A stretch of DNA of 64,000 bases, taken from contig CP075496.1 in assembly GCA_021613535.1 (NCBI GenBank), forward strand, positions 9,114,001-9,178,000, written 5' to 3'. Position 1 is the stretch's first letter. Every line of letters begins with the position of its first letter. Made by a program: the position numbers and the translations under genes. The DNA is from Adineta vaga (Eukaryota > Animalia > Rotifera). Shown piece after piece: positions 25,171-56,321 of this stretch. The notes beneath the pieces are model-generated. The model did not search any database, was not told the DNA's origin, and saw only the letters and a program-made list of their open reading frames with translations.

Positions 25171-25371
25171 CTGACAAATAATTCATCCTTCTCACAATAC
25201 TCCACTGAAACATTGCTTATACGTCCAGAATCTTCAAAAGGATGCAACAACAATAGTCGATTTATTTTAATATTCAAACATCTATATAAAAGCACAATTC
25301 TCAGTTAAACACTCACATATAAGCGCACTTTTGTCTCGAATATTTACTATCATATCACATCTTCATCAAAT

Positions 25372-28300
25372 CTAACGACTACTCAGTTGTCGTCTTAAAT
25401 GTGAAATACGTTGTCGAAATTGTTTTCGATAAAGTGGAGATGGTAAAACAAAGATGATAAAAACACATGCTGCTGGAATAAATGATAAAAAATATCCAAT
25501 CAAATAGAACGAAAATAATCGCGATGATTTTTTACAATCTAAAATAATTGAAATAATCAAATGAGGAAAAGTTAAACAAACAATGATCATTGGACTAATC
25601 AAAAGTTGTTTGTATTTTAGAATTTTCCGTTTCAAATGACTCCAAAATGTTTTGTCTGTTTGTGATGCTGTTCGTTGACGAGCTGTAAATAGAATAATTA
25701 GAATAGTTGAACATATTTGAATACAAAATGGAATAAAATAATGAATAAATATCATCACCATCGTATAAATCTTCAACCAAATCTTATATTCAATCACACA
25801 CCAACTTCGTTCTTCAAGTTCATCTTGAAAAACATGAAGAAAGATGATTTGTGGAATAAGAAGTGTAACATTAAACAAAAATATCAATGGAACAATCACT
25901 TTTGCTATTCTTCGACTTCTACTTCGATCAAAATATAATCCTTGAATAACTGAACATGTTCTTTCAATTGCTACACAAGCATTCAACCAATTGTCAATAA
26001 ATAAAAATAATTTCAATAAAACTTCAATACAACGACAATTAAGAATTAAAACCATTCGAAGATTTGATATATTCTGATAAGAAAGAAAAAGTAACCAGAA
26101 TTTTATTGTAAAAAATGTTATTGTTAACAATGATGTCATCGATGATGAAAATAAATATAATCCACAACCAACTTCATGTACTTTTGCTTGTGAAAATGTC
26201 ATCATTGATAAGATAGCATTGATAATTCCAATAAGAAAGATAATCATTGTAGTTAATGCACTGATTTGAATCGAAAATGATTGAGAAAAAAATCCTTTGT
26301 TATGTCGAAATTCATAGCCAAGAATTTCATCTAATGTTGAACCAAGACCTTTAGCATAAAGTTGACATTGTTGACCAAAGAAACAATTGGCACATAAACA
26401 AATCTTTGTTGATGGACATTGAGGATGATCTTGATAACATTCACCTTGATTTAAACAATAATTATCATTTGATATACATTGAAAATGATGTTGTGATGAA
26501 GAATATTTTTCAGAAAATTCTAAACAATTTGCATGATGATCATTTGTACATAAACATAAATACATTTTATCAATAAAACATTGTAAATGCCAATGTAAAA
26601 AACATAATTTATGAAAATAATTGATTCGTTCATAGGGATGTAATTGTAAAATAGTTGAATTGAGATAGTTGTCGATTGAGTGACATTTTTGTTTTGGATT
26701 AAGACTTGTTAACATTGACATTTGTGATCGATGTTGAAGATAAACAAGATAGAAATCATGTTGAATTTGAATAAAAACTAAATGAAATGGAATGGATATA
26801 TGAAATGTAACAATATGTTGAAAAAGTGTTAATTTTCGAAGAATAATTGTTTGAATTGGTTGAGATTGATTGGATGTTGTATAGAAATATGCAATTAAAT
26901 AAGATGGAATCTCTATTTCATCTATTGAAACATCTAATTCCCATTTTCTATATTCACAATGTAAACCATAATATTTATTTGGACAAATACATGAATAATT
27001 CCGATGAAACATATTTAAATCATTGCGAATACATTGACCATGATTTTGACAATGATTTATTGAACATTTCGATGAGATCAAACAATTCGATCCATATTCA
27101 TTCAATGGACAAACACAAATCGATTCCTTTGCTCTTTTCTTTCCAATAAATATCGAATCATTTGAACATTTATGTCCTGAATTCGATTTCATCCATCGAC
27201 AAAATGATTTCTCTTCATTCACATACTTGACACATTCTTGTCCATTCGAACATTCCATTGAACATTGATTTCCTCTTTCCACTACATTCGATGATAAATT
27301 CAATGATAAACTCATACGATTAACAGGTAGAAACAAGAATGGAATTGTAAAATACCAATGTCCAATATAACTCATCCAATTCTTTTCAATAACATCAATA
27401 CGAATACTATAATTCGTTGACAGATTCTTTGGTCTTGTTGGATATAATAAATATTGATTAAATTTCATTGTACAACTATCTTTTGCAATATATTGAAGTT
27501 GATTAAATTCTATTATAATCTCATCATTATCAATCAATAAAATAACAATACCATATGTTTCATATCGATTTATTGAACTTAATTGTAATGATAAACTAAG
27601 ACGTTGATTTTGATATTCACATAAATCACCATAATAACTTGGTGGACACAAACAATTCGAAAATGTTCCATTATTTGTATATTTCTCAATCTTTATTCCA
27701 CGATTACAATAATGTGTCCATTGATCATCTTCTTCTATCATTGTTGTATTCTGTTTTATCATAAATTCTTCTTCTTCTTCTTCTTCTTCTTCTTCTTCTT
27801 GTGCTTGTAAATGATAATTGATTTCATTGGTGAGATGAGATGAGATTGAAGATGGATAAACGGGTGAAGTAATGAGAGTAAAGAATCTGTATCGATATTT
27901 GTCATGTTCATTTAATCCACAAAGGATTTGTTCGATTTCATTTCGATGATAGGATCCATTTTGCTCACAAGTGAATGTGAATTGAGAATCTTGACAAAAT
28001 GCCTCGTCATCATTGAGCACTGGACAATTTGTAGTTTTATCACATAATTCCGATGACTTTAAGCATGATGAATCATTCAAACATCGAAGATTCTGGGAGA
28101 TTTCATTGGAATAGTATCTCTCACGACACTCAATTTGTTCATCTGTTGCTCCGAGACAATCATCTCGTCCATCATTGACAAGTGTGTGAGGTAAGCAAAA
28201 CATTGTATAATTGTCTGGCGATATACATGGATGATGTTTTGGTGGACATAATGATTGACTACAATTAGATTCATCGCGTCCATCTGAACATGCCCAATAA

Positions 28301-30093
28301 CCATCGCAGCGTGCATATATGTTATCACATACCTTGTTCATTTCACATCCATCTTCGTCGGTGCGTATTTGTCTATTCAGATTGTAATAAAAGTAGTGAG
28401 TAATTCCATCACAAAACTTTTGAAATGGAATCTCTTCTTTACTTTGTGCTCTGCTGAATAAACAAGCATGTTTCTTTCCTATGGGTGACAAGCATTCACC
28501 AGTATTGTCACACTTTTCTCGGTGTTGATGGTTGAGTGAACAACTGTTTGAAAATGTTTCATCATCTATATCGATGCAATCTATGATTTTATCCATAATG
28601 CGTAGTGTAGAAATCATCTTGCGAGAGTTATTACAGTGATACAGCACGGGATATTCTATTAATTTCGTCGAAATTGGAAAGAAACTTTTTGATACTAGAC
28701 AGGAGCGAAACTTTTGCTCAATCCACAATATTAATGCACTCCAAGGATATGCCTTGTCCCATTCGATGTCGTTATCGAGTTCTATCAGACAACTTAGGTT
28801 ACCACGAACTCTTTCAAATGAACGAAATTCACACAACTCTGCATCATAACATATATAATTAGGGAACAAATTCATCTCCAGATCGCTTCGCGAATGAACA
28901 TTTTCATAGAAGAAACGAACATGATTCGAGTAAACGGCAACGCTTGGAAACTGAAAGAAAAGAGGACATTGGGTAAGATACGCATTTGCAGAGTCATTCA
29001 TTAGCCATTGATGACACAATGTTCCATTGATTTGCTTGACAACTCCACTCAAACAAACCATTGTCATCCAACATTCATCGGCAAGATCATCTTGTCTCAT
29101 GATTGATTCAATCAATAACTGATCTCGACCACTATGACAATATTCATATCTTGTCACACATTCGCCATCACCACATGAAAATGTACCTCCATCTGCTCGA
29201 CATGAATGTTCTTCACATCGAAATGATGCATCTTGATAACACATCTTCACATATGAAACATCTAATTTTTCATCAGATCGATCAACACAATCTGCTTCAC
29301 CATCACCATCATTCCACAAATCTTCTGGAATACACATTCCATTATGACATCGATATTCATCATCTCTGCATACATTCATTTCTATCACAAAACAATTTTC
29401 TTCATCAATACCTTCATCAAAACAATCCACAACTCCATTACAAATCTCACGCCAATCAAGACACCACTTCCTTCCATTTTGATGGCATTCAACCAGATCA
29501 TAGCATGGCATCGACACTGGCATCATCGTGTTCGATGAAGGTGAATAGGGTTGTTTTTGTTGAAATGTTGCTTCGATGATTTCATTAAATGACGAGATGT
29601 TTGTGTATCGAGGTTCGAACGAATATTGACATCGAACACCAAACCATGGAGGAGTACAGTTATAGAAGTATTCATTCAATGATTCGATACCTTTCGTATT
29701 CAAATAAGCTTGATAACGTTCAGCTATTTTCATCGAAATCGACCATGACAAAAGTTGCTGAGAAGTGATGCCAGTCAAACTGATCGTTTCGAATGATAGT
29801 TGACGAGCAAGTGGATGAACAGATGAATCCATTGGATCATCAGCTAAACGATGCATTGGACGAAAACAAAATGGTATAACATCAACAGTGATATCATACA
29901 AGTGTTGATAAGCTAGTTTTGCTCGATAAACATAATAATCCAAACAATCATATTCTAATGCATTACTCTTGTCATTTGTTTCTTCGATGAGATTGTACAT
30001 GTTCAGTTGACATGTCATCAATATCAACCAAAATGAAAATAGTAGAAAAATCAGAAATATTCTTTTACCTTGAATCAAGAATATAGTGTTCAT
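25372..30093 (-). CDS. Giant LDLa-repeat / EGF-repeat / 7TM GPCR, copy A (1573 aa, intronless)
   Basis: Signal peptide; LDLa modules (CLDWREICNGVVDC..GIDE, CHNGMCI..DCVDRSDE, CDGYWACSDGRDE); EGF modules (CLCPPSYYGDLCE); C-terminal class-A 7TM with CVAIER. Confidence 0.92.
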   Translation of the reverse strand: MNTIFLIQGKRIFLIFLLFSFWLILMTCQLNMYNLIEETNDKSNALEYDCLDYYVYRAKLAYQHLYDITVDVIPFCFRPMHRLADDPMDSSVHPLARQLSFETISLTGITSQQLLSWSISMKIAERYQAYLNTKGIESLNEYFYNCTPPWFGVRCQYSFEPRYTNISSFNEIIEATFQQKQPYSPSSNTMMPVSMPCYDLVECHQNGRKWCLDWREICNGVVDCFDEGIDEENCFVIEMNVCRDDEYRCHNGMCIPEDLWNDGDGEADCVDRSDEKLDVSYVKMCYQDASFRCEEHSCRADGGTFSCGDGECVTRYEYCHSGRDQLLIESIMRQDDLADECWMTMVCLSGVVKQINGTLCHQWLMNDSANAYLTQCPLFFQFPSVAVYSNHVRFFYENVHSRSDLEMNLFPNYICYDAELCEFRSFERVRGNLSCLIELDNDIEWDKAYPWSALILWIEQKFRSCLVSKSFFPISTKLIEYPVLYHCNNSRKMISTLRIMDKIIDCIDIDDETFSNSCSLNHQHREKCDNTGECLSPIGKKHACLFSRAQSKEEIPFQKFCDGITHYFYYNLNRQIRTDEDGCEMNKVCDNIYARCDGYWACSDGRDESNCSQSLCPPKHHPCISPDNYTMFCLPHTLVNDGRDDCLGATDEQIECRERYYSNEISQNLRCLNDSSCLKSSELCDKTTNCPVLNDDEAFCQDSQFTFTCEQNGSYHRNEIEQILCGLNEHDKYRYRFFTLITSPVYPSSISSHLTNEINYHLQAQEEEEEEEEEEEFMIKQNTTMIEEDDQWTHYCNRGIKIEKYTNNGTFSNCLCPPSYYGDLCEYQNQRLSLSLQLSSINRYETYGIVILLIDNDEIIIEFNQLQYIAKDSCTMKFNQYLLYPTRPKNLSTNYSIRIDVIEKNWMSYIGHWYFTIPFLFLPVNRMSLSLNLSSNVVERGNQCSMECSNGQECVKYVNEEKSFCRWMKSNSGHKCSNDSIFIGKKRAKESICVCPLNEYGSNCLISSKCSINHCQNHGQCIRNDLNMFHRNYSCICPNKYYGLHCEYRKWELDVSIDEIEIPSYLIAYFYTTSNQSQPIQTIILRKLTLFQHIVTFHISIPFHLVFIQIQHDFYLVYLQHRSQMSMLTSLNPKQKCHSIDNYLNSTILQLHPYERINYFHKLCFLHWHLQCFIDKMYLCLCTNDHHANCLEFSEKYSSSQHHFQCISNDNYCLNQGECYQDHPQCPSTKICLCANCFFGQQCQLYAKGLGSTLDEILGYEFRHNKGFFSQSFSIQISALTTMIIFLIGIINAILSMMTFSQAKVHEVGCGLYLFSSSMTSLLTITFFTIKFWLLFLSYQNISNLRMVLILNCRCIEVLLKLFLFIDNWLNACVAIERTCSVIQGLYFDRSRSRRIAKVIVPLIFLFNVTLLIPQIIFLHVFQDELEERSWCVIEYKIWLKIYTMVMIFIHYFIPFCIQICSTILIILFTARQRTASQTDKTFWSHLKRKILKYKQLLISPMIIVCLTFPHLIISIILDCKKSSRLFSFYLIGYFLSFIPAACVFIIFVLPSPLYRKQFRQRISHLRRQLSSR
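27766..27798 (-). repeat. (GAA)11 coding microsatellite, poly-Glu in copy A
   Basis: ttc x11 on the + strand. Confidence 0.9.
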
Positions 30094-30836
30094 TGTTAAT
30101 CTTGTAGTTTGTTTTTATTGAATCTCACGCAAAGCAGAAAGTTTTAACTTCTATATGGTGATGAGAATATGATAGTGAGATATAAAAGTAGGAGAGACAG
30201 AGAGGAAAATGCTTGGTATAAGTTATGTGATGTTTGCAGTGAGGAGAAAAAAAGGAAGGAAATGGTTTTTACAAAAGATACATGTACAGAAACATGATTG
30301 TCAAATTTGTATGAACCCTATGGAATTTTGATGGAGCTGTGTGTAGAGATGAGGAAATGATAATTTATCTTTACATTTACTGAACGTGGGTTTGCCGCAG
30401 CTTTGCGAAGGTCAAGTATGTGAAGAAATATTGTATAAGTGTCCTTGTGAAAATAATTGAATAAGAGTATATAACTTCGCATCTGGTCTTTTGTTCGGTC
30501 GCAAGACTAACACTCTTAAATACGGATTTATGAGAGAATTTATACTATTTATTTTTGCCAGTATTATGAATTTATGTGTGCCAATGAAAGATATTCGACG
30601 GCTTTCGGAAAAATCTGATTCTAAAGATGTGAATATGAGTTCCGTCTGCATTAGTCCCCCCTATTTCTCACATTCTCACTCAAATATTCAAGATGCAATT
30701 CTCTTATTTGCGATTCGTTATCGGTAGTTTTTCTCGAGAGATTAGAGGTCTCGGCTGAATGATTGATTCCATGATCATATATTCTGATACGTGCGATATC
30801 ACGCTATAAAATCTGATAGTCAATTTTTCAACGTGT

Positions 30837-31586
30837 CTATCCAGAGTCATATGTGATCAGCAACTTTTGTATCATTCGGTATAAGGCAGCATCCCAAATC
30901 TGATATCCATTCGCATTCAAATGCAAATCGTCTTCTAAATGCTCCCATCCTATCTGTTCCGGCGAATCCATCCAACGAACACGATGCTGTTGCTGCATTT
31001 GCGACTCCATTTTTTCTTGATTAACTTTAGTAACTAGTTCTTTTATAGCTGAATTTGATTGCATCGTACATTGTTCGTTAACATCTTTTCGTTTAGAGAA
31101 GCCTAGAATGAGTATCTGCGTACGAATGGGAAAATCTCTCAGTATGGCTTGCAAAAGAAGATAATAATCATCTAAATGTTGCTGTTGTAAAGCTTGATTT
31201 GGTCGAAGATTATTAGTGCCTATCAGTAACACAATAACTTTAGGATTATGAGGTTTCAACAGTCGAAATAATCCTAGGTTGACGCGATAAAGTACATTCT
31301 CAATTTTATCACCGCCTACGCCACCATTGAAGATTTGAGGATAGTGCAATTGTCCAAGCTGTGTGTTCTGTCCAGTAGTTTTGAAACGCTCAATTGCAGA
31401 ACTACCAATCAAAACGATATCAATTTGTGATGAATGGTGTTCAGATGAGACACTGTTATCAGAAGATGCTAAATGAATAATTTTTAATTGTGGTAGATGC
31501 ACATTAATATGTGTATCATGAGAGCGTTGTTTAAAACGAGCCCGTTCAGCAATACGTTGATCAAGTTCCAGCAGCGTCGAAGACAT
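30837..31586 (-). CDS. SGNH/GDSL hydrolase (PAF-acetylhydrolase-like), intronless
   Basis: Blocks LIGSSAI, GVGGDKIENVLYR, IGTNNL, DDLHLN; start could also be ATG 31667. Confidence 0.85.
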   Translation of the reverse strand: MSSTLLELDQRIAERARFKQRSHDTHINVHLPQLKIIHLASSDNSVSSEHHSSQIDIVLIGSSAIERFKTTGQNTQLGQLHYPQIFNGGVGGDKIENVLYRVNLGLFRLLKPHNPKVIVLLIGTNNLRPNQALQQQHLDDYYLLLQAILRDFPIRTQILILGFSKRKDVNEQCTMQSNSAIKELVTKVNQEKMESQMQQQHRVRWMDSPEQIGWEHLEDDLHLNANGYQIWDAALYRMIQKLLITYDSG

Positions 31587-32126
31587 TCTCTTCACTTCAT
31601 GTATCAAATTTCTTCTGATTCTCGCGTAAATTTTATGAATGTATAAGTATAATTTGATGGTAGACATAATAAAAATGTCTCCTCTATTAAAATAAACACT
31701 TCAACTGCATAAACGTGTAGATCAAAAGTGAAAAAATATGTTTGAATGTGATTGCTTACGTTAACTTCGTATGACAATTGACAAACATACTTTTGTACAT
31801 GTAGATAATGTTAATAAAGAAAATTATCTGATTAACACTACACGATCAATCGTCGTGCCATTTTTTAAGAAATTATTAAAAAAAAATTATAAATATACTT
31901 TTCCTTCCATATTTTCAGTGACTATGGAAACGAGCACGAAAGGTGTATAAGTTAGATATGGTATGTAGTGATTGTGTACTTATATGAACTATAAGAATAC
32001 TATATTCACATAAGATAGATTTATTACTATTTGAATAATTTGTCGACCGTAACTCATACTATGTACAAAACATTGATTAGAAAAAGAAATTCTTTTCTCA
32101 AAACACACGTAGATATGATCGTATAG

Positions 32127-33307
32127 TTATTCATTAATGTCTTCATATCTTGGTAAGATTTCACTGATAATAAAATCTTCATAGCTTGGTGGTGAATTTT
32201 CTTCTTCATCAATTGATAAATGTTCAAGAATTTCAGGTAAAGATTTTAATTCATCCATGATTTTTAATGTTCGTTGATGATCAGTTGTACAAATAATTGG
32301 TAGTGTTAAAGTAAAATGACTATTAAATAAACCATGTATATGACATTGAATATGAAGTTCATATCGAACATTCTTATACAATGATGTAGGAGCCATAACT
32401 TGACATTTCTCTAATGGAATTGATAATTCATAAATATTTTGATGATATTCATTATTAAATCCTTTAGATTTAAATACTGTTAATAATGAAGAAAAAATCG
32501 TAAAGTCAGTCTCTTCATCTGTTATCGTTCTATATTGTTTGAGTATTGCTCGAATTGACTTAATAGTTACTTTCATTGGATTATGTATTTCAATTTCTAA
32601 TAGATGAGTACAACCAGGCACCATTAGGCCATTATTTGAAAGGATTCCATATAATTTTACACCCTCATACTGAATGCTACCTTCGATGTTGTAATTTTGT
32701 AATAATTGATGCGAAAGAGTTGAGATGGAAGTTGGAGTATATAGAGTAAATGGAACTTTTCGAGATAAATTTGAACGATATAAATAAACACGAGCATAAT
32801 AACATATATATGAATCATTTTCATCATGATGTGGTAATGATGAAGGAAGTGAAGAATCCAAAAGACCATCAAATACCCATCGATAAGCTGGACGTGGATT
32901 GTTGATATCCTGAAAATAAAACAAGAGAACAATCAATTCCAAGTTTTTCTTTTTCAGATAAAAACAAATAGGAGTAACATTTTCACAAAACTAAACAATG
33001 TCAATAAAAAGCTAACCAATTGTTGATTGTCAGTTGGAATTTTGATTACTTGCACCCGTTTACGAAAAAATATTTGTACATTATTAAGATTTCTCTGTTG
33101 ATAAATATTTGTTTTTACATCTTTTGATTCACCGATTAATTCAACATATAATGGTCCATATCTGAAGTTTAAATCATGACCTTTATCGTTCGTTACAATA
33201 TCAATAATACCATGAATTCGATCACCACTCAAATAAAAATCATAGGGTGTTTCACGAGTTAATTTTACTTTAAATGATGATAATACTGATGGAGTAATAT
33301 TACCCAT
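32127..33307 (-). CDS. Alpha-arrestin (arrestin-domain) protein, 2 exons
   Basis: MGN start at 33307; YLSGDRIHG, VELIGE; intron 32910-33016; C-domain APTS..VRYELHI..TLPII; tail PY motifs PPSY and LPRY. Confidence 0.8.
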
Positions 33308-34045
33308 GTTTATCGAGATAGATTTAAGAAATGTGGTAGAATTCCAGTGTAAACCAAAGGCGTAGAAGAAAAGAAAGTTAAGGACAAACGATGAAAGAAA
33401 AAAGACGGAAAAAAGAAATAGCGAGAAATAGTTGGCACACATGATGACGCTACTTTGACTAGAAACGAAGAAAACAAGCAATCGGCTTGATAGAACGGAA
33501 GGAAAAAAAATCAGAAACGATCTTTCTCTCTCTCCACCCTGCTCCCCACTACCACCATGTAGTGGAAGAACGCAAAAAAGAACAGAAAAGATCTCAAAGG
33601 AGTTCAGGACATAACTGAATTGGCAAGAAAAGATATTTTGCATAGGAAAATTATTCCGTATATTATTGACTACAGAAACAATTCGATCTGTAGATGATCG
33701 TGTCTGTGGAAACTGACAGCTATCTTATAGAATAAATTTATTTTTATAGATAAAGTCACACATTAAAAGAAAGGAGAATGTATAAAAAGAATCATATTAT
33801 CTTCTATTTACATCATATAGTACAACTTTGTTGTATGAGATGAGCATATCAATAGGAACAATGCTCAAGGTATTAGTCCATATTTTATCATATTTTCAAA
33901 AACTATTTATTAAAGTGCCCTCTATATTTGAGTGAAACTATACTAACTCAAAACGATAAATTCAAGAAGTCAGAATTTCATAAAAAAACAAAAAAATGTT
34001 CATAGTTATATTCATAATTAATTGAATTTATGTTCAAAACTTTCA

Positions 34046-34633
34046 TTATTTAGATCCATGCAATTGTTCAAAGTGGAAACGTCCTGCAGCTAAAGTACAA
34101 ATACCAAAACTAAAGATGGTTAACAGATGAGCAGTTATATAGAGATCGGCGGAGTAATCATTGAAGACAATTATTCGAGCTCCTTCGGCAAGACCAGCTA
34201 GCATGAATAAGCAGGCAAGAAAGAGTAAAATAGGCGCAATTAAATTCATCCATGCACTCAAGCTAACGACGGCCATGATCAATGTGGCAACTATACCGAA
34301 AGCAATGAAAATAATACCAATGACGGAGAGACCAGCAGCATTCTGCAAACGGACACTCGTATCATTAGCAGAAGTGTAGAGACCACTAAAAGGTGAGTCA
34401 TAATAGAAAAGATTTCCATCTCGATTAAGACATTGATTTAAAGAACCATTTGTGAAAAAACTACACGCATAGAAGAAATTATTTGTCGACGATCGCTGAG
34501 CACTACCTGAAGAATATTGATATGTCGATTGCCAGTTTGGTGTTCCTATACCAACACAAGCTAGTAGAAGAGCGATTGCACTAAATGCAATAGAAATAAA
34601 CGCAATGATTCGACTAATATTATGTGGTTGCAT
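34046..34633 (-). CDS. Claudin/PMP22-like four-TM protein
   Basis: TM1 then TPNW, an extracellular loop with two Cys, and three further TM helices; ATG 34633. Confidence 0.75.
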   Translation of the reverse strand: MQPHNISRIIAFISIAFSAIALLLACVGIGTPNWQSTYQYSSGSAQRSSTNNFFYACSFFTNGSLNQCLNRDGNLFYYDSPFSGLYTSANDTSVRLQNAAGLSVIGIIFIAFGIVATLIMAVVSLSAWMNLIAPILLFLACLFMLAGLAEGARIIVFNDYSADLYITAHLLTIFSFGICTLAAGRFHFEQLHGSK

Positions 34634-35188
34634 CGATAGTTCAGTTTTCTTTTGTTTGACAAACGATATTTTTCTTCTTATCAATAGTGCAAATGTCTTT
34701 ATTATTGTTATAGACTATTTTAAGTTGTTGCATTTCTTGTTTTCTTTTTCAATGGTGAAAACGAATAGTATTGACTATAGTTACCAAGGACATGTGATTC
34801 TATCATCCGTATTGTTACGAATTGTAAATGAAAAAGTAAGGAATACAGTTTCTAATACATGAAACATCGAAAAAAAGAGCGCATTTTATGTTCGTTCTCT
34901 TATCAAACGATGATGTACAACTTTCAAAGTATAGTTTGAAGAATCATTGAAACTATTTTGATTGTTTCAATACATTTTTTTATTGATTCTTTTCTTTCAG
35001 TACGTATACACAGCTGAGTTTCGATAATTCATTGCCTCTCGATCGTTTTAAATCTTCAAAAGATTTTCTATTTTAAATGAAATCATACGACTTTATTTAT
35101 AATTATATTTTAGAAAACGTGTATATTTTCACTTGTAGACAGTTAGTTTTTGTTTTTATATTGAAATAAAATGATTTGGAAAAAAGTA

Positions 35189-35767
35189 CTACTCTTTTTT
35201 CGTATATGCTGTACATTCAATTTCAACTTTTGCACTTGCTGGTAGTGTTTTCACAGCAAAAGTTGTTCTGGCTGGATAATCTTCCATGGAAGAAAAATAT
35301 GAAGCATAAATTGCATTAACCGATTGAAAATCATTCATATCAGTTAAAAGTACAAGACATCGTTGTACTTGACTTAAATTTGCACCAGCAGCATTTAAAA
35401 CAGCTTGAATATTACGAAAGACTTGTTGAGTTTGATTTCGAACATCATCTGATACTAATTGACCCGTTGCAGGATTAATTCCAATTTGTCCACTCAAAAA
35501 GAGAATATAATTTATTTGAACGGCCTGATTATATGGTCCAATTGGTTTAGGAGCATCCTTTGAATAAAATTCATATTTAAATACATAGAGAACTTAAATT
35601 GAATGAGTGCTTTCACTTACTGGTGTTGATATAACTTTTTTCTTAACATCATAATCGCGAAGTTCTTCTTTGTGAACAATTCCTGTTGATCTAATTTTGG
35701 AAGCATTACAGTTATATTGACTAAAGATGCCAATGAGGCAAATACATAAAATCAAAATTCTATTCAT
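35189..35767 (-). CDS. RidA/YjgF/UK114 imine deaminase with N-terminal signal peptide, 2 exons
   Basis: Exon 1 MNRILILCICLIGIFSQYNCNA...KKVISTP; intron 35558-35620; then DAPKPIGPYNQAV, SGQIG, DMNDF..VN..Y, YPARTT (catalytic Arg), VEIE. Confidence 0.9.
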
Positions 35768-45303: not shown

Positions 45304-46179
45304 CTGTATAATATCAATGTTTCAAATAGAATCATTGTACAATTTCTACTTTTTTTTCAAAAATATAATTAAAATCATTAATGATCAAAAAGGATCAAGC
45401 TAAGATGTTCTACATCAGACAACAAATAGAGGACATTGTAGGCACCGTTATAAAACAGAATTATTTATTTTAACATTTATTATAGAAATAATGTATTGAA
45501 GAATTGATAAAGGAAGGAGTTCTCAAATTTTCTATAAGATAAATTAGAAAATGATATTTATATCACTTACTTTGTGCACATTTAGCGAGAAATGTCCAAC
45601 TATGATAATAACCCATTCGAAGAACCGTTGAAATGAACTTTATTAGAAATACTTTCTTTATTCAACAACTTTTATGTTGCTCACAATCGTATACATTGAA
45701 TATATATATATATGATAGACTGAAGAGCAAATCTGTCGTGCATTGTTTCTTAGATCAATCTGACGAACGAACACATACATTCATTATATGAATAAAAATT
45801 CGAGGGTGAACGAAAAAAATGTCGTCAGGAAAAGAGAAAAAAAAATATACTCAAATGAAGTCTTATATGAATTAGTTTATATCGAAGATTATTTTTGATT
45901 AAATTCAATTGAAACATATTCTCTTTTAATTCTTCTCTTTATTTATTTAAAACGATGGTGATCAGCTATAAAAATCTGAACGTGTAAATAAATATTATCG
46001 TATCGACGTGAAGCTAGAACCATAGAGCTAGCACCACGAAAGAAATAATATATAAAAAGGAATTTATGTCCATAAAAATGAGTTCATTCGACGCAGAATC
46101 AAATTCTGCATCGAATGGTGGTACTTTCATCATCAGAAGAAGATTGGGAAAAGTTTCACTTAGATCTTTAATTTTCTCT

Positions 46180-47046
46180 TATACGTATATGTCCTAGGCA
46201 AAATTGAGTTTTAGGCAAAATTAAACTTAGGTAAAATTCGTTTATAATTAGGCGCACAGTCAAGAAATTAGTTTTTCTTTTATAATTAAATGCTAGTTTT
46301 TATTCAGGTAATTTAGATAAATGTATTAACCATGATGAATAGAGGGAGACAGCGCAGATGAATAGATAGTGGAAGTATCTTAGAAGTATACTGAATTCCC
46401 AGATGGTCATAATACTAATTTCAAAAAAGACAAGATCATTCGACAATCTATAGTTCGTTGAATAAAGCTAGAAAAACATGGACGAGACGAAATCATGTGA
46501 TCATCAAACCTTCGCAACTTGCTCGTAGAGATCTGTATGAAGAAGAAAATATTCTTAACACCTACAGTTGCGACAAGAGTGAGCCGGAGAAATTGCAACT
46601 CGTTCTAAAAGAGGAACATTTTCATACCAGCACTGAACACATTTAAACATTTTTTATTAAATCCTTCTTCTCCTCCTTTTTGGTCGGACTATTAACATCA
46701 TACTCATTAGTAATTCTTATAATCTCGAAACTATACATTTTTCCCAACTAAATTTAATTTCTAATGAGTACAACTCGCGAGCTCTATATCTTCCTAAACT
46801 TTAGTGTAATTTCTGTTGAATACAAGTAGCGAACTCTACAACTTCCAAACTTTTTGTTCATTTTCTATTGAATACAATTTATCATATAAATACCTATCTA
46901 AACTTCATTTCTATATTAAGCATAATTTAAAACATGCGAACATATTTTAAACTAAGATTTATATTTGAAATTAAAACTTAGAATACCTGAAAAATTAAAG
47001 TTTAACTTTGCCTAAAACCCAACTTTGCCTTACACATCTACATATA
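46180..47046. mobile_element. Non-autonomous TIR DNA element (MITE-like), ~870 bp
   Basis: 46180-46228 (tatacgtatatgtcctaggcaaaattgagttttaggcaaaattaaactt) matches the reverse complement of 46998-47046 with ~8 mismatches; TA-rich ends; no transposase inside. Confidence 0.75.
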
Positions 47047-48990
47047 TTCTCTCAAACGTTTTCTATATTCTGCGAGTTATAATCGTTCACCCCTACTGTC
47101 ACTCCACGTCCTCATCCTTAAGATGGGTAGTGGATGGATAGAATAAGATATAGTACGTGTGGAGTATAGCCAATATATTGATGGAATAAGTTAGAATATA
47201 CAAGCGGATTGCTGAACAATTGGAGTATCGCCTTTTTCTCTCTTGACCTCTGTTTCTACTACAGCCAATTTTATTAGTGACAATTGAGATACACGAATGC
47301 CGGATATCATAGGCTAAAACAGCTTAAAGACATTTGTAACGGAGAAAAACAATATTATTTTCTTTATCAGTATCAAACTTTTGTTCTCTCACATCATTAT
47401 CACTACATATCTTCCACAGAATGAGTCGAAAAAAGCCGAGTCAAGATAATTAAAGTTGCCTTTTCATTCATTGATTCTGTTCAATTACATAAAATTAATT
47501 AATCAAAATGTTATAATTTTAAAGAAAATACTTATCTCATCAACTAGGAAAAAATCTACATAGATAAAATGATTTAGAGCTATATGAATTAGTTATTGAT
47601 GACTTTACTCGAAAATAGCAGTAAATGTCTGTATCTAGAGAGCTCTCCGCAGCCATTCAACAGTAATTTATCGATAGAAAACAAAACTTTGGAGAACTAT
47701 GACATCATAATATTGAATAAAAGAAATAATCACTTGTCTAACATAACTGACGTTTAGACGATGATTATTTCGATGTCATACTTCCTTTTTCAATGTTGGA
47801 TAAAAATGATGAGAAGAACAGCAGTTGTTGTTTTCATATTTGAATATGACACATACAGACATTATTGTGCGCCGTTATTAGATAAAAGAGTATTAGACAT
47901 TATTTTGCAGAATACCAGCATATATTTTGAGTCATTCATAGACGGTTTTTTTTTATTCGGCGAAACTTGCTAATGCAATAAAGATATTATAAGTTATTCT
48001 TATGAATATGAAATAGAAGATTAATGTTATGGATGAAGATATGAATTAGACTATCCAGCAGATATTAAGCGACAAACAAGCCATGGAATTCGGTGCTAAG
48101 AGACGGTTCATTTATGATTAATTTTGAAAAGGTACAACATATACACATTGTCAAGACTTATAGACCGTATCATAATGATGAATGCATATGGCTAGTATTG
48201 TTGTGTTATATTGTGACTAGTGTTATTTGAATAACTGACTTGTTTTCTTATTCAGATCGTTTATAATCAAAGCATAATTCTCTTCTACTTCAAACCTACT
48301 TGTTCAGCTATAATTAGTTAGATTAGTCGTGGAACGTATATGCTATCACAACTTCTTATAGTCATTGTTCATCAGCATCATAGTGATAATTGTGATGAAA
48401 AACGGCAGATTCTTTCAAATAATCCAATGATAATATTGATTTGAAACGAGAGTTCTGCTGAATAATTACAGTGGTGATGAAAGATTTTCGAAATGTCTTT
48501 CTAATTCGCTTATATGTGATATACCACTACCGTATAGAAGAAGAAATTTTGTTCATAATGATGTATGAAGTTCGTATTTGCCATTACAGGAAAAAATAAT
48601 TGTTTTCTTCGTCGACGATCGTTGTATTCTATATGATTAATGCATGAATATTCGAATGAATTCAATGAAAAATGAATTGGTAGGATGTTGGAAATATGTG
48701 CGTGTTGAAAAGATATCAAGCACTTGTAATTTTTCCCAAAGTAATGAATAATACTGTATGCAACGAGTAGGTTTATTCCTTTTTTTGTATTTTCGGCAAA
48801 CAGAATCATCTAATACAACAATAGAATCTTATCAATATGATCATGACGGATTATTATGCGCTGCAATTGAAAATGTAAGACGTAATTCAAAGATAGATAT
48901 GTGTAGGTGATGCTCGGGAAAATGATGACTTACTTCCGATCTTTTATCAATGGGAAGCTTTCGCAGATGAAGACTGTTTCCCTAATGCAC

Positions 48991-48998
48991 TATATAAG
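48991..48998 (+). promoter_or_regulatory. Candidate TATA box of the defensin-like gene
   Basis: tatataag upstream of a probable 5'UTR intron (49077-49131) and ATG 49134. Confidence 0.4.
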
Positions 48999-49133
48999 AA
49001 GACTGCTTGCTACAAGAAAAGCATTCCTTGTTTAGTTCTTATAATTAAAACTAATTTTTCAAAGCATCAAAAAAAGGTAAGTAGAAAATCGAGTAGACTG
49101 TGCGTAATGTGAAATACATATTTAGTTATAGGT

Positions 49134-49452
49134 ATGGTTTACTCAAAACATTCTATCTTGGTTATAATGTTTGCCATTGTATTATTAATTGTGCAAATAG
49201 TGGCCCAACTGAGCGCAAGTGTGAATGCTAGTAAGAAGAAATATTTTTTGATCAATATAGCGCTCAATATTTTATATCTGAATAGATACGATTGATGGTA
49301 ACGATGTACCAGAAGATCGTCGCATTAGATATTGCAACGGTACAAGCATTCGAGACGACATTACATGTAATCGATGGTGTCGATCGATTCGTTTCAGCTA
49401 CGGTTATTGCCAGCCACGCAACGGCAAAATTGTTTGCTTCTGTCGTGGTTGA
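49134..49452 (+). CDS. CS-alpha/beta defensin-like prepropeptide (87 aa), 2 coding exons
   Basis: Exon 49134-49230 is a signal peptide; intron 49231-49285; exon 49286-49452 gives NTIDGNDVPEDRRIRYCNGTSIRDDITCNRWCRSIRFSYGYCQPRNGKIVCFCRG*. AATAAA at 49524. Confidence 0.85.
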
Positions 49453-50917
49453 TGAATAACGGGTGTTATTACGCAATTAATCCAGAACTTTAAAAAAACA
49501 TTTATAATATCACTTGATAGAGCAATAAAACAGTGCTTTTAAAGCACATGGATATAAGTGTATTCATCATATTCGCTATTAGCTAATATCTGAGAAAGTC
49601 AATCATATAATAAACTGTACGAGTGTGGATGAAGATGCTCGTAGGATATAAGGATCGTTAAAAATAAATAGGGTGTGGGGTGTGGGTGTGTTTTTGGACG
49701 AGCAGTCAAGTTCACATTTAAATCTGGGTGCAGATGTGGATGTGCATTAAAGTTTCATTTGCATTCAAATGATGATATAAATTCCCCTTTAGATATGGGT
49801 GGAGGTTTGAGCGTACTTTTAAGTTTTTACTTGGACGTGATTATTGCAAGTAAATCAGATGTCGAAGACTTGCATGTATGAGACACAGAGAGTTTAAAAT
49901 CATAAACTTAGACCCAAACTCAAATGCAATATCAAAGCATAAAACGAACCAAACCCTTACGGTTTGTGTTTGTTACGTGTATAATTGTGAGTGCCGGTAA
50001 ATATGGGAAGGAATCAGAACCCAGCGGTGGAAATTGAATGGCATTATAGGATAGACACAAAAGGGAAAAGTGATTCCTTATAGTTCTGGTTAGATCCTAT
50101 GTTTCTTGACGAATAAAAACACTCATAAGATTTGGGAAACTATTGAACTATTCAGAAACTAACAGGATACGGTGAATCCGAGGAACCAGAAACGAAATGT
50201 TCCTACTTATAATGGCTTTTGAGAGTCCCTGATGATTTCTAGGAATCGCTATGTCCGTCTTAGTAGACGTGCATCACATAAAACCCAAACTGTTTGGGAA
50301 TTTTATTTTAAGCTAGCCAACGGGCTTGAATGAGATATCGATTTTGCGAATATGTCAATCTTAATTCATCTGGACTTCCGAGTTTTTAGTTATTAACATC
50401 AGCTTGGGTTCAGTGGGTGTCCAAGATGAGGGACGACTATCAGTATATTCATACTCAACGGTGTCAGTCAATCAAGGGATTCATTAATGATCTTTGTTAT
50501 TTCTAAAAAAAAGTTACAGTCGTTTCCAACGTTGAAGAGACAATCGATTTAAACTTTTACGCAGATCCAGGCTCGCAACTTTACGCAGCACATCTCACAA
50601 ACACACTTATATTACATTCTTTTATGTTACGAACCTTCTCCGAACGGCTTCAAGCACACGTTCAGTAAATGTAAAGATAAATTATCATTCCATCACGTTC
50701 ATACACGTTTGATAATCATGTTTCTGCACATGTATCTTTTGAAATACGATCTCTCTCCTTTTTCTCTTCACTGCAAACATCACATAACTTATGCCAGGCA
50801 TTTTCCTCTCTTTCTCTCCTACTTTTTTTATCTCACTATCATATTCTCATCACCATATAGAAGTTAAAACTTTCTGCTTTGCGTGAGATTCAATAAAAAC
50901 AAACTACAAGATTAACA

Positions 50918-53900
50918 ATGAACACTATATTCTTGATTCAAGGTAAAAGAATATTTCAGATTTTTCTACTATTTTCATTTTGGTTGATATTGATGACATG
51001 TCAACTGAACATGTACAATCTCATCGAAGAAACAAATGACAAGAGTAATGCATTAGAATATGATTGTTTGGATTATTATGTTTATCGAGCAAAACTAGCT
51101 TATCAACACTTGTATGATATCACTGTTGATGTTATACCATTTTGTTTTCGTCCAATGCATCGTTTAGCTGATGATCCAATGGATTCATCTGTTCATCCAC
51201 TTGCTCGTCAACTATCATTCGAAACGATCAGTTTGACTGGCATCACTTCTCAGCAACTTTTGTCATGGTCGATTTCGATGAAAATAGCTGAACGTTATCA
51301 AGCTTATTTGAATACGAAAGGTATCGAATCATTGAATGAATACTTCTATAACTGTACTCCTCCATGGTTTGGTGTTCGATGTCAATATTCGTTCGAACCT
51401 CGATACACAAACATCTCGTCATTTAATGAAATCATCGAAGCAACATTTCAACAAAAACAACTCTATTCACCTTCATCGAACACGATGATGCCAGTGTCGA
51501 TGCCATGCTATGATCTGGTTGAATGCCATCAAAATGGAAGGAAGTGGTGTCTTGATTGGCGTGAGATTTGTAATGGAGTTGTGGATTGTTTTGATGAAGG
51601 TATTGATGAAGAAAATTGTTTTGTAATAGAAATGAATGTATGCAGAGATGATGAATATCGATGTCATAATGGAATGTGTATTCCAGAAGATTTGTGGAAT
51701 GATGGTGATGGTGAAGCAGATTGTGTTGATCGATCTGATGAAAAATTAGATGTTTCATATGTGAAGATGTGTTATCAAGATGCATCATTTCGATGTGAAG
51801 AACATTCATGTCGAGCAGATGGAGGTACATTTTCATGTGGTGATGGCGAATGTGTGACAAAATATGAATATTGTCATAGTGGTCGAGATCAGTTATTGAT
51901 TGAATCAATCATGAGACAAGATGATCTTGATGATGAATGTTGGATGATAATGGTTTGTTTGAGTGGAGTTGTCAAGCAAATCAATGGAACATTGTGTGAT
52001 CAATGGCTAATGAATGACGTTGCAAATGAGTATCTTATCCAATGTCCTCTTTTCTTTCAGTTTCCAAGTGTTGCCGTTTACTCGAATCATGTTCGTTTCT
52101 TCTATGAAAATGTTCATTCGCGAAGCGATCAGGAGATGAATTTGTTCCCTAATTATATATGTTATGATGCAGAGTTGTGTGAATTTCGTTCATTTGAAAG
52201 AGTTCGTGGTAACCTAAGTTGTCTGACACAACTCTATAACGACATCGAATGGGACAAGGAAAATCCTTGGAGTGCATTAATGTTGTTGATTGAGCAAACG
52301 TTTCGTCCTTGTTTAGTATCTGGAAGTTTTATTCCAAGTGAAATGACACTTTCAAATCACTCAACAATATATAAATGTTCGAACTCATCAAAATTGATTC
52401 CTATGAGTCGAGTCAAAGATTTTTTAGAAGATTGTGTCGAGGGTGATGATGAAAGTATCACAAATAGTTGTCAGCTTGGCGATCGACATAGAGTCAAATG
52501 TTATGGCGTAAATGATTGTTGGTCATCAATACAGAAAGAAAAAGTCTGTTTACGGAGTAGGAGGCAAAGTCAAAACAATCTCACATTTCTAAGTTTTTGT
52601 GATGGAATTGCTCACCACTCCTACCAAAATCTCAACGGAAAAGAGCGCAACGAAGAAGATGGATGTGAAATGAACAAGGTATGTGATAACATATATGCAC
52701 GCTGCGATGGTTATTGGGCATGTTCAGATGGACGCGATGAATCTAATTGTAGTCAATCATTATGTCCACCAAAACATCATCCATGTATATCGCCAGACAA
52801 TTATACAATGTTTTGCTTACCTCACACACTTGTCAATGATGGACGAGATGATTGTCTCGGAGCAACAGATGAACAAACTGAGTGTCGTGAGGCATACGAT
52901 TCCAATGAAATCTCCCAGAATTTTCGATGTTTGAATGATTCATCATGCTTAAAGTCATCGGAATTATGTGATAAAACTACACATTGTCCATTGCTCAATG
53001 ATGACGAAGCATTTTGTCAAGATTCTCAATTCACATTTACTTGTGAGCAAAATGGATCATATCATCGAAATGAAATCGAACAAATTCTTTGTGGATTAAA
53101 TGAATATGACAAATATCGATACAGATTCTTTACTCTCATTACTTCACCCATTTATCCATCTTCAATCTCATCCCATCTCACCAATGAAATCAATTATCAT
53201 TTACAAGCACAAGAAGAAGAAGAAGAAGAAGAAGAAGAATTTATGATAAAAAAGAATACAACAATGATAGAAGAAGATAATCAATGGACACATGATTGTA
53301 ATCGTGGAATAAAGATTGAGAAATATACAAATAATGGAACATTTTCGAATTGTTTGTGTCCACCCAGTTATTATGGTGATCTATGTGAATATCAAAATCA
53401 ACGTCTTAGTTTATCATTACAATTAAGTTCAATAAATCGATATGAAACATATGGTATTGTTATTTTGTTGATTGATAATGATGAGATTATAATAGAATTT
53501 AATCAACTTCAATATATTGCAAAAGATAGTTGTACAATGAAATTTAATCAATATTTATTATATCCAACAAGACCAAAGAATCTGTCAACGAATTATAGTA
53601 TTCGTATTGATGTTATTGAAAAGAATTGGATGAGTTATATTGGACATTGGTATTTTACAATTCCATTCTTGTTTCTACCTGTTAATCGTATGAGTTTATC
53701 ATTGAATTTATCATCGAATGTAGTGGAAAGAGGAAATCAATGTTCAATGGAATGTTCGAATGGACAAGAATGTGTCAAGTATGTGAATGAAGAGAAATCA
53801 TTTTGTCGATGGATGAAATCGAATTCAGGACATAAATGTTCAAATGATTCGATATTTATTGGAAAGAAAAGAGCAAAGGAATCGATTTGTGTTTGTCCAT

Positions 53901-55633
53901 TGAATGAATATGGATCGAATTGTTTGATCTCATCAAAATGTTCAATAAATCATTGTCAAAATCATGGTCAATGTATTCGCAATGATTTAAATATGTTTCA
54001 TCGGAATTATTCATGTATTTGTCCAAATAAATATTATGGTTTACATTGTGAATATAGAAAATGGGAATTAGATGTTTCAATAGATGAAATAGAGATTCCA
54101 TCTTATTTAATTGCATATTTCTATACAACATCCAATCAATCTCAACCAATTCAAACAATTATTCTTCGAAAATTAACACTTTTTCAACATATTGTTACAT
54201 TTCATATATCCATTCCATTTCATTTAGTTTTTATTCAAATTCAACATGATTTCTATCTTGTTTATCTTCAACATCGATCACAAATGTCAATGTTAACAAG
54301 TCTTAATCCAAAACAAAAATGTCAATCAATCGACAACTATCTCAATTCTACTATTTTACAATTACATCCCTATGAACGAATCACTTATTTTCATAAATTA
54401 TGTTTTTTACATTGGCATTTACAATGTTTTATTGATCAAATGTATTTATGTTTATGTACAAATGATCATCATGCAAATTGTTTAGAATTTTCTGAAAAAT
54501 ATTCTTCATCACAACATCATTTTCAATGTATATCAAATGATAATTATTGTTTAAATCAAGGTGAATGTTATCAAGATCATCCTCAATGTCCATCAACAAA
54601 GATTTGTTTATGTGCCAATTGTTTCTTTGGTCAACAATGTCAACTTTATGCTAAAGGTCTTGGTTCAACATTAGATGAAATTCTTGGCTATGAATTTCGA
54701 CATAACAAAGGATTTTTTTCTCAATCATTTTCGATTCAAATCAGTGCATTAACTACAATGATTATCTTTCTTATTGGAATTATCAATGCTATCTTATCAA
54801 TGATGACATTTTCACAAGCAAAAGTACATGAAGTTGGTTGTGGATTATATTTATTTTCATCATCGATGACATCATTATTAACAATAACATTTTTTACAAT
54901 AAAATTCTGGTTACTTTTTCTTTCTTATCAGAATATATCAAATCTTCGAATGGTTTTAATTCTTAATTGTCGTTGTATTGAAGTTTTATTGAAATTATTT
55001 TTATTTATTGACAATTGGTTGAATGCTTGTGTAGCAATTGAAAGAACATGTTCAGTTATCCAAGGATTATATTTTGATCGAAGTAGAAGTCGAAGAATAG
55101 CAAAAGTGATTGTTCCATTGATATTTTTGTTTAATGTTACACTTCTTATTCCACAAATCATCTTTCTTCATGTTTTTCAAGATGAACTTGAAGAACGAAG
55201 TTGGTGTGTGATTGAATATAAGATTTGGTTGAAGATTTATACGATGGTGATGATATTTATTCATTATTTTATTCCATTTTGTATTCAAATATGTTCAACT
55301 ATTCTAATTATTCTATTTACAGCTCGTCAACGAACAGCATCACAAACAGACAAAACATTTTGGAGTCATTTGAAACGGAAAATTCTAAAATACAAACAAC
55401 TTTTGATTAGTCCAATGATCATTGTTTGTTTAACTTTTCCTCATTTGATTATTTCAATTATTTTAGATTGTAAAAAATCATCGCGATTATTTTCGTTCTA
55501 TTTGATTGGATATTTTTTATCATTTATTCCAGCAGCATGTGTTTTTATCATCTTTGTTTTACCATCTCCACTTTATCGAAAACAATTTCGACAACGTATT
55601 TCACATTTAAGACGACAACTGAGTAGTCGTTAG
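50918..55633 (+). CDS. Giant LDLa-repeat / EGF-repeat / 7TM GPCR, copy B (1571 aa, intronless)
   Basis: Same architecture as copy A, near-identical outside the central ectodomain. Confidence 0.92.
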   Translation: MNTIFLIQGKRIFQIFLLFSFWLILMTCQLNMYNLIEETNDKSNALEYDCLDYYVYRAKLAYQHLYDITVDVIPFCFRPMHRLADDPMDSSVHPLARQLSFETISLTGITSQQLLSWSISMKIAERYQAYLNTKGIESLNEYFYNCTPPWFGVRCQYSFEPRYTNISSFNEIIEATFQQKQLYSPSSNTMMPVSMPCYDLVECHQNGRKWCLDWREICNGVVDCFDEGIDEENCFVIEMNVCRDDEYRCHNGMCIPEDLWNDGDGEADCVDRSDEKLDVSYVKMCYQDASFRCEEHSCRADGGTFSCGDGECVTKYEYCHSGRDQLLIESIMRQDDLDDECWMIMVCLSGVVKQINGTLCDQWLMNDVANEYLIQCPLFFQFPSVAVYSNHVRFFYENVHSRSDQEMNLFPNYICYDAELCEFRSFERVRGNLSCLTQLYNDIEWDKENPWSALMLLIEQTFRPCLVSGSFIPSEMTLSNHSTIYKCSNSSKLIPMSRVKDFLEDCVEGDDESITNSCQLGDRHRVKCYGVNDCWSSIQKEKVCLRSRRQSQNNLTFLSFCDGIAHHSYQNLNGKERNEEDGCEMNKVCDNIYARCDGYWACSDGRDESNCSQSLCPPKHHPCISPDNYTMFCLPHTLVNDGRDDCLGATDEQTECREAYDSNEISQNFRCLNDSSCLKSSELCDKTTHCPLLNDDEAFCQDSQFTFTCEQNGSYHRNEIEQILCGLNEYDKYRYRFFTLITSPIYPSSISSHLTNEINYHLQAQEEEEEEEEEFMIKKNTTMIEEDNQWTHDCNRGIKIEKYTNNGTFSNCLCPPSYYGDLCEYQNQRLSLSLQLSSINRYETYGIVILLIDNDEIIIEFNQLQYIAKDSCTMKFNQYLLYPTRPKNLSTNYSIRIDVIEKNWMSYIGHWYFTIPFLFLPVNRMSLSLNLSSNVVERGNQCSMECSNGQECVKYVNEEKSFCRWMKSNSGHKCSNDSIFIGKKRAKESICVCPLNEYGSNCLISSKCSINHCQNHGQCIRNDLNMFHRNYSCICPNKYYGLHCEYRKWELDVSIDEIEIPSYLIAYFYTTSNQSQPIQTIILRKLTLFQHIVTFHISIPFHLVFIQIQHDFYLVYLQHRSQMSMLTSLNPKQKCQSIDNYLNSTILQLHPYERITYFHKLCFLHWHLQCFIDQMYLCLCTNDHHANCLEFSEKYSSSQHHFQCISNDNYCLNQGECYQDHPQCPSTKICLCANCFFGQQCQLYAKGLGSTLDEILGYEFRHNKGFFSQSFSIQISALTTMIIFLIGIINAILSMMTFSQAKVHEVGCGLYLFSSSMTSLLTITFFTIKFWLLFLSYQNISNLRMVLILNCRCIEVLLKLFLFIDNWLNACVAIERTCSVIQGLYFDRSRSRRIAKVIVPLIFLFNVTLLIPQIIFLHVFQDELEERSWCVIEYKIWLKIYTMVMIFIHYFIPFCIQICSTILIILFTARQRTASQTDKTFWSHLKRKILKYKQLLISPMIIVCLTFPHLIISIILDCKKSSRLFSFYLIGYFLSFIPAACVFIIFVLPSPLYRKQFRQRISHLRRQLSSR
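53213..53239 (+). repeat. (GAA)9 coding microsatellite, poly-Glu in copy B
   Basis: gaa x9; explains the 2-aa length difference from copy A. Confidence 0.9.
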
Positions 55634-56321
55634 ATTTGATGAAGATGTGATATGATAGTAAATATTCGAGACAAAAGTGTGCTTATATGTGAGTGTTTAA
55701 CTGAGAATTGTGCTTTTATATAGATGTTTGAATATTAAAATAAATCGACTATTGTTGTTGCATCATTTTGAAGATTTTAGACGTATAAGCAATGTTTGAG
55801 TGGAGTATTGTGAGAAGGATGAATTATTTGTTTCTCGTGTAGAGCATTGTCTAATTTAAAATGCATTTGGAACAATCCTGCTAAAACCAATATATTGAGC
55901 TTATGAAATGAGTACATTTATAGTAGGACAAAAGTTAAACTTTGAGATAAATTAAGCTGATAACGGTAGTTTCTTCCAATACAAATGTGATTGTCATTAA
56001 ATTCTCCGTGATTGCATCATAGAGATTATGTTATTTATTTCGTCCTATACTGATTCTTATTCGTCAGTATTCGATCTCGATTAGACATAAGACTTTTTCT
56101 AAATATTACATTATCGTCGCATATCCCATCTTGCATAGTTGATATTAATTGTTACTATTGAAAAATACTTCTATATTACGAATACATCAGTTACATTTCT
56201 TCGTATAGACGAATAAAGAACCTATTCTCTGTATGATAAAATATTGTGAATCTATAATTTGTTAGATTATCATGATCTTTTATTATTATTATCATTCATA
56301 GAATGGTGTATCTTGAACTTT

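Follow-up and report, generated by a model that had tools for sequence, protein, structure and literature searches.

How can two genes be almost the same along nearly their whole length and yet differ at about half of their positions within one short block? This question is raised by a stretch of 64,000 nucleotides from chromosome 4 of the bdelloid rotifer Adineta vaga (G000:C4:9114001-9178000 of a 100.8-Mb assembly in six contigs; this whole stretch is referred to below as the window), which carries two large intronless receptor genes, A and B, in the two arms of an inverted repeat. An original prediction, made from the sequence of the window alone, described the pair as near-identical except for one swapped block in the extracellular part. 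It offered two accounts of that block, namely import from a distant paralog by segmental gene conversion, or arm-to-arm conversion that homogenised everything but a selected specificity module, and it proposed that the pair represents a cassette-shuffling system of variable receptors. In this study, we report the regional divergence of the two arms, separate phylogenies for the block and its flanks, searches for a donor, and a comparison with independent sequencing data. The results indicate, with a probability of roughly 0.7, that A and B arose by an old inverted duplication and have since been homogenised by gene conversion between the arms, which left a single island unerased. The pattern is the known "peak of divergence" and does not constitute a new diversity-generating system.

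Methods

The arms were defined by repeat search, BLAST and global MAFFT alignment of arm A with the reverse complement of arm B, and the upstream regions were compared in a three-way MAFFT alignment. Synonymous divergence (dS) and the ratio of nonsynonymous to synonymous divergence (dN/dS) were obtained by Nei-Gojobori counting. Protein domains were assigned using Pfam, and the genes of the spacer were taken from the list of open reading frames (ORFs) together with Pfam results. Amino acid (aa) positions refer to the proteins encoded by genes A and B.

As independent data, Logan contigs of four studies on A. vaga (2013, 2015, 2021 and 2022) were placed on positions 25000-30500 of the window, i.e. 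on the arm A side. Contig depth is a coarse measure and was used only for the 1:2 contrast between single-copy and two-copy sequence; rare variants would be missed in a comparison of contigs.

Results

The inverted repeat was confirmed, with arms of about 5.2 kb, each of which is essentially one uninterrupted intronless ORF. Genes A and B are arranged head-to-head about 20 kb apart, with their 5' ends toward the spacer, and their proteins are 94% identical overall. Two or three amino acid differences are found in the first ~315 residues and three in the last ~750. Between these parts lies a gap-free block, termed the core, in which A and B share only about 52% of nucleotides and 44% of amino acids (44% over aa 466-580). 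Every cysteine of the core and an acidic DC..DDE motif align between the two genes and both reading frames remain open, and on all these points the original description of the pair was accurate. Coding differences are clustered far beyond chance, with 151 in 146 codons versus 41 in the remaining ~1,427 codons. The coordinates of the arms, genes and segments are listed in Table 1.

Table 1. Features of the inverted receptor pair and their positions in the window
Feature	Position	Strand	Description
Arm A	25174..30388		Aligned to the reverse complement of arm B (BLAST/MAFFT)
Arm B	50657..55831		Reverse-complement counterpart of arm A
Spacer	30389..50656		Unique, ~20.3 kb; separates arms A and B
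Gene A	25372..30093	-	Intronless ORF, 1573 aa; LDLa/EGF-type cysteine-rich ectodomain and rhodopsin-type seven-transmembrane (7TM) domain
Gene B	50918..55633	+	Intronless ORF, 1571 aa; Pfam results as for gene A
Upstream region of gene A	30094..30440	-	Homologous to the upstream region of gene B (three-way MAFFT)
Core A	28357..28705	-	Gap-free divergent island, aa ~463-579; transition zone 28706-28785 beside it
Core B	52306..52654	+	Counterpart island of core A
Perfect tract	28134..28356	-	223 bp, 100% A/B identity; adjoins the core on its C-terminal side
C-terminal-side shoulder	27500..28133	-	~3% differences; aa ~654-865 by coordinates (statistics used aa 583-800)
N-terminal-side shoulder	28706..29150	-	~3% differences; aa ~314-462

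The block had also been held to be the single difference between the copies and to have sharp edges, which proved correct in part. In the base-level alignment the first core mismatch stands exactly at 28357, and the C-terminal-side edge is sharp; dense mismatch stops at about 28705 (52654-52306 in B), where the N-terminal side is formed by a transition zone of ~80 bp. The core is, moreover, not the only difference. Identity between the arms is 99.6% at the ends and about 97% in both of the shoulders that surround the core and its perfect tract, and the shoulders (aa 314-436 and 583-800) show 2.7% nucleotide differences, compared with 0.4% in the two ends of the gene (aa 1-313 and 801-1573; Fisher p = 2e-9). 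The only indel within the coding arms is in a poly-glutamate tract (27766-27771, and the region of 53236), which has 14 glutamates in A and 12 in B.

Synonymous divergence between the arms is strongly non-uniform. It amounts to 0.005 and 0.015 at the N- and C-terminal ends, respectively, and to 0.03 and 0.04 in the N- and C-side shoulders, and reaches 1.0-1.5 in the core, a difference of about 100-fold between the core and the ends. Since this dS is combined with a dN/dS of 0.31-0.38, the core is an old divergence under purifying selection and not a recent diversification. Across 25 paralogs the core region is not hypervariable, and other paralog pairs diverge uniformly along the gene; the mosaic is therefore specific to the A/B pair.

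Separate trees of the core and of its flanks are incongruent. In the flank tree, which included 26 full-length paralogs, A and B are 0.004 apart, and gene C, a paralog on chromosome 3 (G000:C3:1162890-1167575), stands at 0.56. In the core tree of the paralogs, A, B and C form one clade (100/100) with near-equal distances of 1.14-1.31. When the A. ricciae ortholog was included, the maximum-likelihood tree of core nucleotides was (C,(A,(B,A. ricciae))), with support values of 94/91 and 91/90, the latter for (B,A. ricciae); the corresponding protein core tree was unresolved.

In the parts outside the core, A and B share 99-100% of their amino acids and group with A. ricciae protein P0001 at 69-70% identity, and C groups with A. 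ricciae P0003 at 73-83%. Here the dS between A and B is 0.005-0.04, versus 0.57-0.83 to P0001. Because A and B are closer to each other than either is to the ortholog, although their core divergence is at least as old as the speciation, the pair carries the signature of concerted evolution. Between B and P0001, dS stays uniform throughout the gene (0.57-0.81, with 0.67-0.71 in the core), and between A and P0001 it rises to 1.5-2.2 in the core. At the 151 differing core sites, B agrees with A. ricciae at 70 and A at 48. The segment directly upstream of B (window 47679-50684) is collinear with the region upstream of P0001 (spacer part 47679-49443; L036 in A. ricciae), and B is for this reason the positional ortholog of P0001, to which it is orthologous in sequence as well. 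Core B may accordingly represent vertical inheritance, and core A, on the best tree, would be an old branch within the lineage of this gene that separated before A. vaga and A. ricciae split.

The edges of the arms provide further evidence on age. The outer edge of arm A, at 25174, is sharp, and its inner edge decays gradually over 30199-30388. Along the upstream regions the identity between A and B falls from 100% to ~85% and then to ~65-75%, with indels that include one of 32 bp, and the homology is still clear; in a tblastx comparison, L036 9684-9771 matched both window 30363-30449 and window 50637-50684. The inner edge is thus older than the homogenised parts suggest. As a duplication at dS ~0.01 cannot give an inner edge of 65-75% identity, the arms have more likely been homogenised than recently duplicated. 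The incongruent trees, the contrast in dS, the shoulders, the perfect tract abutting the core and the old inner edge all support that part of the original prediction in which arm-to-arm conversion homogenised everything but the block.

The other account, import of the block from a distant paralog, was examined by donor searches. At the DNA level, each core with 50-100 bp of flank recovered from the assembly only the two arms and gene C, at 69-71% identity. In the protein search of the same genome, A, B and C were mutually 51-54% identical over the core, and the next best of the 135-148 family matches reached 38-41%. No near-identical donor for either core was found in the 100.8-Mb assembly by DNA or protein search, nor were a cassette archive or pseudogene fragments matching either core found there. 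Public protein data likewise contained no donor for either core. The nearest public protein to core A was A. ricciae P0003 (56-57% aa), which was the best non-self match (57%) in an exhaustive search of public representatives; a word-indexed search returned only P0001 (49%) and one Rotaria protein. A further protein, P0126 (68% over 62 aa), was rejected as a relative of core A, as it is the public model of gene A itself.

For import to have occurred, the A/B pair would have been young or fully homogenised when a block of ~350 bp was pasted into A from a member of the same clade that is now lost or unassembled, and the instant heterology would have blocked later conversion. Core A is in fact the odd one of the two, given that the dS of core B to A. 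ricciae equals that of the rest of the gene and the dS of core A does not. The block is gap-free and has one very sharp edge, its best protein match (P0003) belongs to the C group, a clade of A with the C group is not rejected (p = 0.07 in the approximately unbiased (AU) test), and only a single A/B-type protein is known in A. ricciae. The dS of core A to C (1.15-1.24) is, however, not below that of core B to C (0.83-0.91), and the core DNA tree places core A beside B and A. ricciae instead of C, so that it nests within its own orthogroup. The weak next-best protein matches, which have no counterpart at the DNA level, leave no donor in the genome. Homologous repair from a donor with flanks ~25% diverged is unlikely, and the old divergence of the arm edge, together with the shoulders, would require concerted evolution in any case. 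On this balance of evidence, import of core A appears unlikely.

A second alternative is that the repeat is an assembly artefact, one arm being a misplaced haplotype or a chimera. Scaffolding artefacts were later shown to account for the palindromes of the 2013 A. vaga draft (PMC8494291), the 0.4-3% divergence of the arms falls within the allelic range, and the reads contain half-depth variants, detailed in the Discussion, that are present in neither arm. Against this, a contig of 409 bp (28327-28735), which spans core A out to the onset of A/B identity on either side, was present in all four studies with 3-7 letter differences. In all four runs the arm contigs had about twice its k-mer depth, and the unique flank had about the same depth as this contig (core A, arms and unique flank, respectively: 62, 120-165 and 56 in X1; 102, 194-259 and 107 in X2). 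The half depth of the core A contig is what is expected of two true copies with one private core each. Furthermore, 20 kb of unique sequence containing genes lies between the arms, their two upstream regions are distinct, and a core that is ~50% diverged, in frame and cysteine-conserving is not an allele. An artefact is thus very improbable. Within core A itself, three variants were seen at full depth in most runs, two of them in all four and one in three.

Lastly, the proposal of a constant 7TM part with ligand-binding modules exchanged by conversion, akin to immune or antigen diversification, draws on a very large family (899 first-look candidates, at least 30 full-length paralogs), a modular cysteine-rich ectodomain and one module that differs between otherwise near-identical genes, but it can hardly be upheld for a region that is not hypervariable in the family, has just two versions and no donor library or pseudogene fragments for either core, shows the same core A in data sets from 2013 to 2022, and combines saturated dS with a constrained dN/dS of 0.3-0.4, in a family whose other paralog pairs diverge uniformly.

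The receptor genes are part of a very large family whose intronless members encode proteins of ~1,500-1,600 aa, in which LDLa-like and EGF-like cysteine modules precede a rhodopsin-type 7TM domain. In A and B the 7tm_1 profile (PF00001) scored 47.9 bits against a cut-off of 30.5 (aa 1300-1539 in A, 1298-1537 in B), and Ldl_recept_a (PF00057) scored 25.3 bits at aa 242-276, against a gathering cut-off of 24.1; the EGF-like modules gave weak Pfam scores. Inside the divergent core, no LDLa profile exceeded the gathering score in Pfam, and the piece aa 332-643 contained a sole weak LDLa match (E = 1.6-1.9) at aa ~580-611, directly after the core. Most paralogs show the pattern CxNSxKCIS...DGIxDC...DDE in the core, and A and B lack one of those cysteines. 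The core segment probably represents a degenerate LDLa-like cysteine module with the cysteine-rich linker that follows it. An AlphaFold2 model of aa 425-645, based on a 29-sequence alignment, had a mean predicted local distance difference test (pLDDT) score of 51.8 and was too poor for judging the fold.

In public data, 288 proteins matched at E < 1e-100; those that carry a name come from Adineta and Rotaria, and many others are unnamed metagenome proteins. No description of this receptor family was found in the literature. The public A. vaga model of gene A (P0126, 842 aa) removes aa ~73-545 and most of the 7TM domain despite the continuous ORF; it is apparently mis-spliced and probably a mis-annotation. 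No run recorded as RNA contained the stretch, and two small-share runs of other organisms were only guessed to be RNA.

Paralog C (L008) has an extremely low guanine-cytosine (GC) content at third codon positions, 0.05-0.12, compared with 0.15-0.35 in A and B and 0.17-0.37 in the A. ricciae ortholog. Its dS to A and B (0.5) is lower than that between A/B and A. ricciae (0.6), yet its dN is higher. Third-position GC, viewed as a sign of biased conversion, showed no arm-specific signal. A. vaga chromosomes 1-3 are homoeologous to chromosomes 4-6 (PMC8494291); C was rejected as a syntenic ohnolog of the pair, as a paralog of the neighbouring GDSL lipase lies on chromosome 1, the homoeolog of chromosome 4, and C lies on chromosome 3.

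Two further family pairs have the same -/+ head-to-head arrangement with a spacing of 17-20 kb, namely G000:C5:1653542-1658161(-) with C5:1678214-1682809(+), and G000:C1:11038423-11042943(-) with C1:11059913-11064493(+). Both are fully diverged (38-44% to B) and the partners of each fall in different clades; the shared layout may be coincidental or recurrent. The idea that inverted pairs are an ancient feature of the whole family was rejected, since the + members of these pairs belong to another clade and core B groups with A and C.

The ORFs of the spacer between the arms encode a GDSL lipase, an arrestin-like protein, a claudin-like protein, an AAA fragment, an EGF protein and a small cysteine-rich protein. 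Just upstream of B lies a small gene (window 48623-49443, L036 8131-9048) whose conservation in A. ricciae is seen in tblastx matches of 35-54%, with E values as low as 8e-18; beyond the gene directly upstream of B, the search for wider A. ricciae synteny gave only paralog-level matches of 25-28%. A motif of ~40 bp (CACGTTCAGTAAATGTAAAGATA...ATTATCATT), located ~260-300 bp before the ATG, is conserved in A, B and the A. ricciae ortholog (window 30350-30388 and 50657-50695; L036 about 9700-9770) and is a candidate promoter element. Neighbouring ORFs outside the arms encode a short rhodopsin-type 7TM protein of 312 aa (18482-19417), a TPR-repeat protein of 1141 aa (20433-23855), and a protein with WSC and glycosyl-hydrolase (Glyco_hydro_cc) domains (56322-57452) of a type frequent in fungi.

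Discussion

The explanation that we favour is homogenisation of an old inverted duplicate. According to the core tree, the duplication would postdate the divergence of the chromosome-3 paralog C and predate the separation from A. ricciae. From then on, the arms would have copied sequence from each other repeatedly and non-reciprocally, by intrachromosomal conversion of inverted repeats, probably during double-strand-break repair; this would have kept ~4.8 of the 5.2 kb nearly identical, and thereby in concerted evolution. A segment of ~350 bp in the ectodomain would have escaped, retaining its original saturated divergence under purifying selection in both copies. An island of ~50% identity would be unable to pair and would thus block heteroduplex extension, and conversion tracts would halt at its edge. 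Halting of tracts at the heterology would account for the perfect 223-bp tract beside the core, and less frequent conversion of sequence near the island would account for the shoulders. The outcome would be two receptors with a common signalling part and a nearly common ectodomain, which differ in one extracellular module.

The odds are about even between selection for two binding specificities and a passive recombination barrier as the reason for the persistence of the island. More specifically, and only as a tentative suggestion, the island may be kept by selection because two extracellular modules are required on one signalling chassis that is homogenised by conversion, in which case aa ~463-579 would be the ligand-specificity determinant of an orphan family. 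If this were true, concerted evolution at this locus would be older than the split between A. vaga and A. ricciae, in a putatively ancient asexual lineage.

Several points weigh against homogenisation of an old duplicate. We infer gene conversion from its footprint, and the conversion itself was not observed. The start of an island under continuous conversion would require a cause of its own, either gradual divergence under selection or a one-off event such as import from a lineage now lost. The core is short, and alternative topologies for it are not rejected in AU tests (p = 0.07-0.30). Only one A/B-type gene was found among the A. ricciae proteins, and its contig ends 1.6 kb past the flank examined, short of where a partner ~20 kb upstream would lie; a duplication before the speciation therefore needs a loss in A. 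ricciae or an unannotated copy. The comparison with read contigs covers the stretch around core A. Finally, half-depth variants that are found in neither assembled arm occur within the arms. They are spread across window 25300-30139, for instance at 28181-28235 and 29975-30139, and number 10 within a 225-bp piece at the gene's 5' end; they may represent a second haplotype or differences lost in repeat polishing. Through haplotype choice or polishing, the exact identity of the arms may be uncertain by a few percent at most.

Comparable architectures are known from other genomes. Primate Y ampliconic palindromes consist of inverted arms around a unique spacer, have genes in the arms and are kept at >99% identity by intrachromosomal conversion. 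The A/B locus resembles them in its inverted arms with a gene inside, its unique spacer and its near-identity; it differs in that the arms are only 5.2 kb long with one gene each, the spacer is four times as long as an arm and, unlike in typical Y palindromes, the arm contains an unconverted island.

The closest parallel for the island itself is the peak of divergence that forms under interlocus conversion, as in the red and green opsins of humans, which are ~24 kb apart and have their peak in exon 5, and for which theory was developed by Innan (2003) and Teshima & Innan (2008) (PMC3924837). The pattern has also been reported in Tigriopus GOT1p1/p2 (PMC3728101). As in these cases, the A/B duplicates lie tens of kb apart and are mostly near-identical, with a short internal region of high, old divergence; the divergence is graded around the island, region trees are incongruent, and the island is the candidate functional difference. 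In contrast to them, the A/B repeats are inverted and not tandem and the host is a bdelloid. Also, the opsin and GOT1 peaks comprise few substitutions, whereas the A/B island has a dS of at least 1 and 44% aa identity over ~115 aa.

In domain layout, A and B are similar to the relaxin-family receptors RXFP1/2 and the type C LGRs, for which an LDLa module is mentioned (PMC11863921), in that one or more extracellular LDLa-class modules stand N-terminal to a rhodopsin-family 7TM domain. This likeness rests on the Pfam domain layout and no membership is claimed. Unlike those receptors, A and B are intronless and have no detected leucine-rich-repeat domain; their ectodomain, compared with that of RXFP1/2, is ~1,250 aa of degenerate LDLa-like and EGF-like cysteine modules, and their family has hundreds of copies. 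With the trypanosome variant surface glycoproteins (VSG), Neisseria pilin and the chicken immunoglobulin pseudo-V genes, the pair shares a surface-protein segment that differs while the rest is constant; it departs from them in having neither a donor archive nor variation among data sets, and in having an island that is old and under purifying selection.

Conclusions

How bdelloid rotifers recombine and repair DNA breaks is a central question in their biology, and the A/B locus would be a clean case, open to dating, in which inverted paralogs of this group undergo non-allelic gene conversion. The two genes also form a natural domain-swap pair, in which the 7TM domain and the C-terminal ~770 residues are shared, the rest is nearly so, and one module of ~115 aa sets them apart. 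That module hints at where specificity may lie in a large receptor family whose named members come only from bdelloid rotifers.

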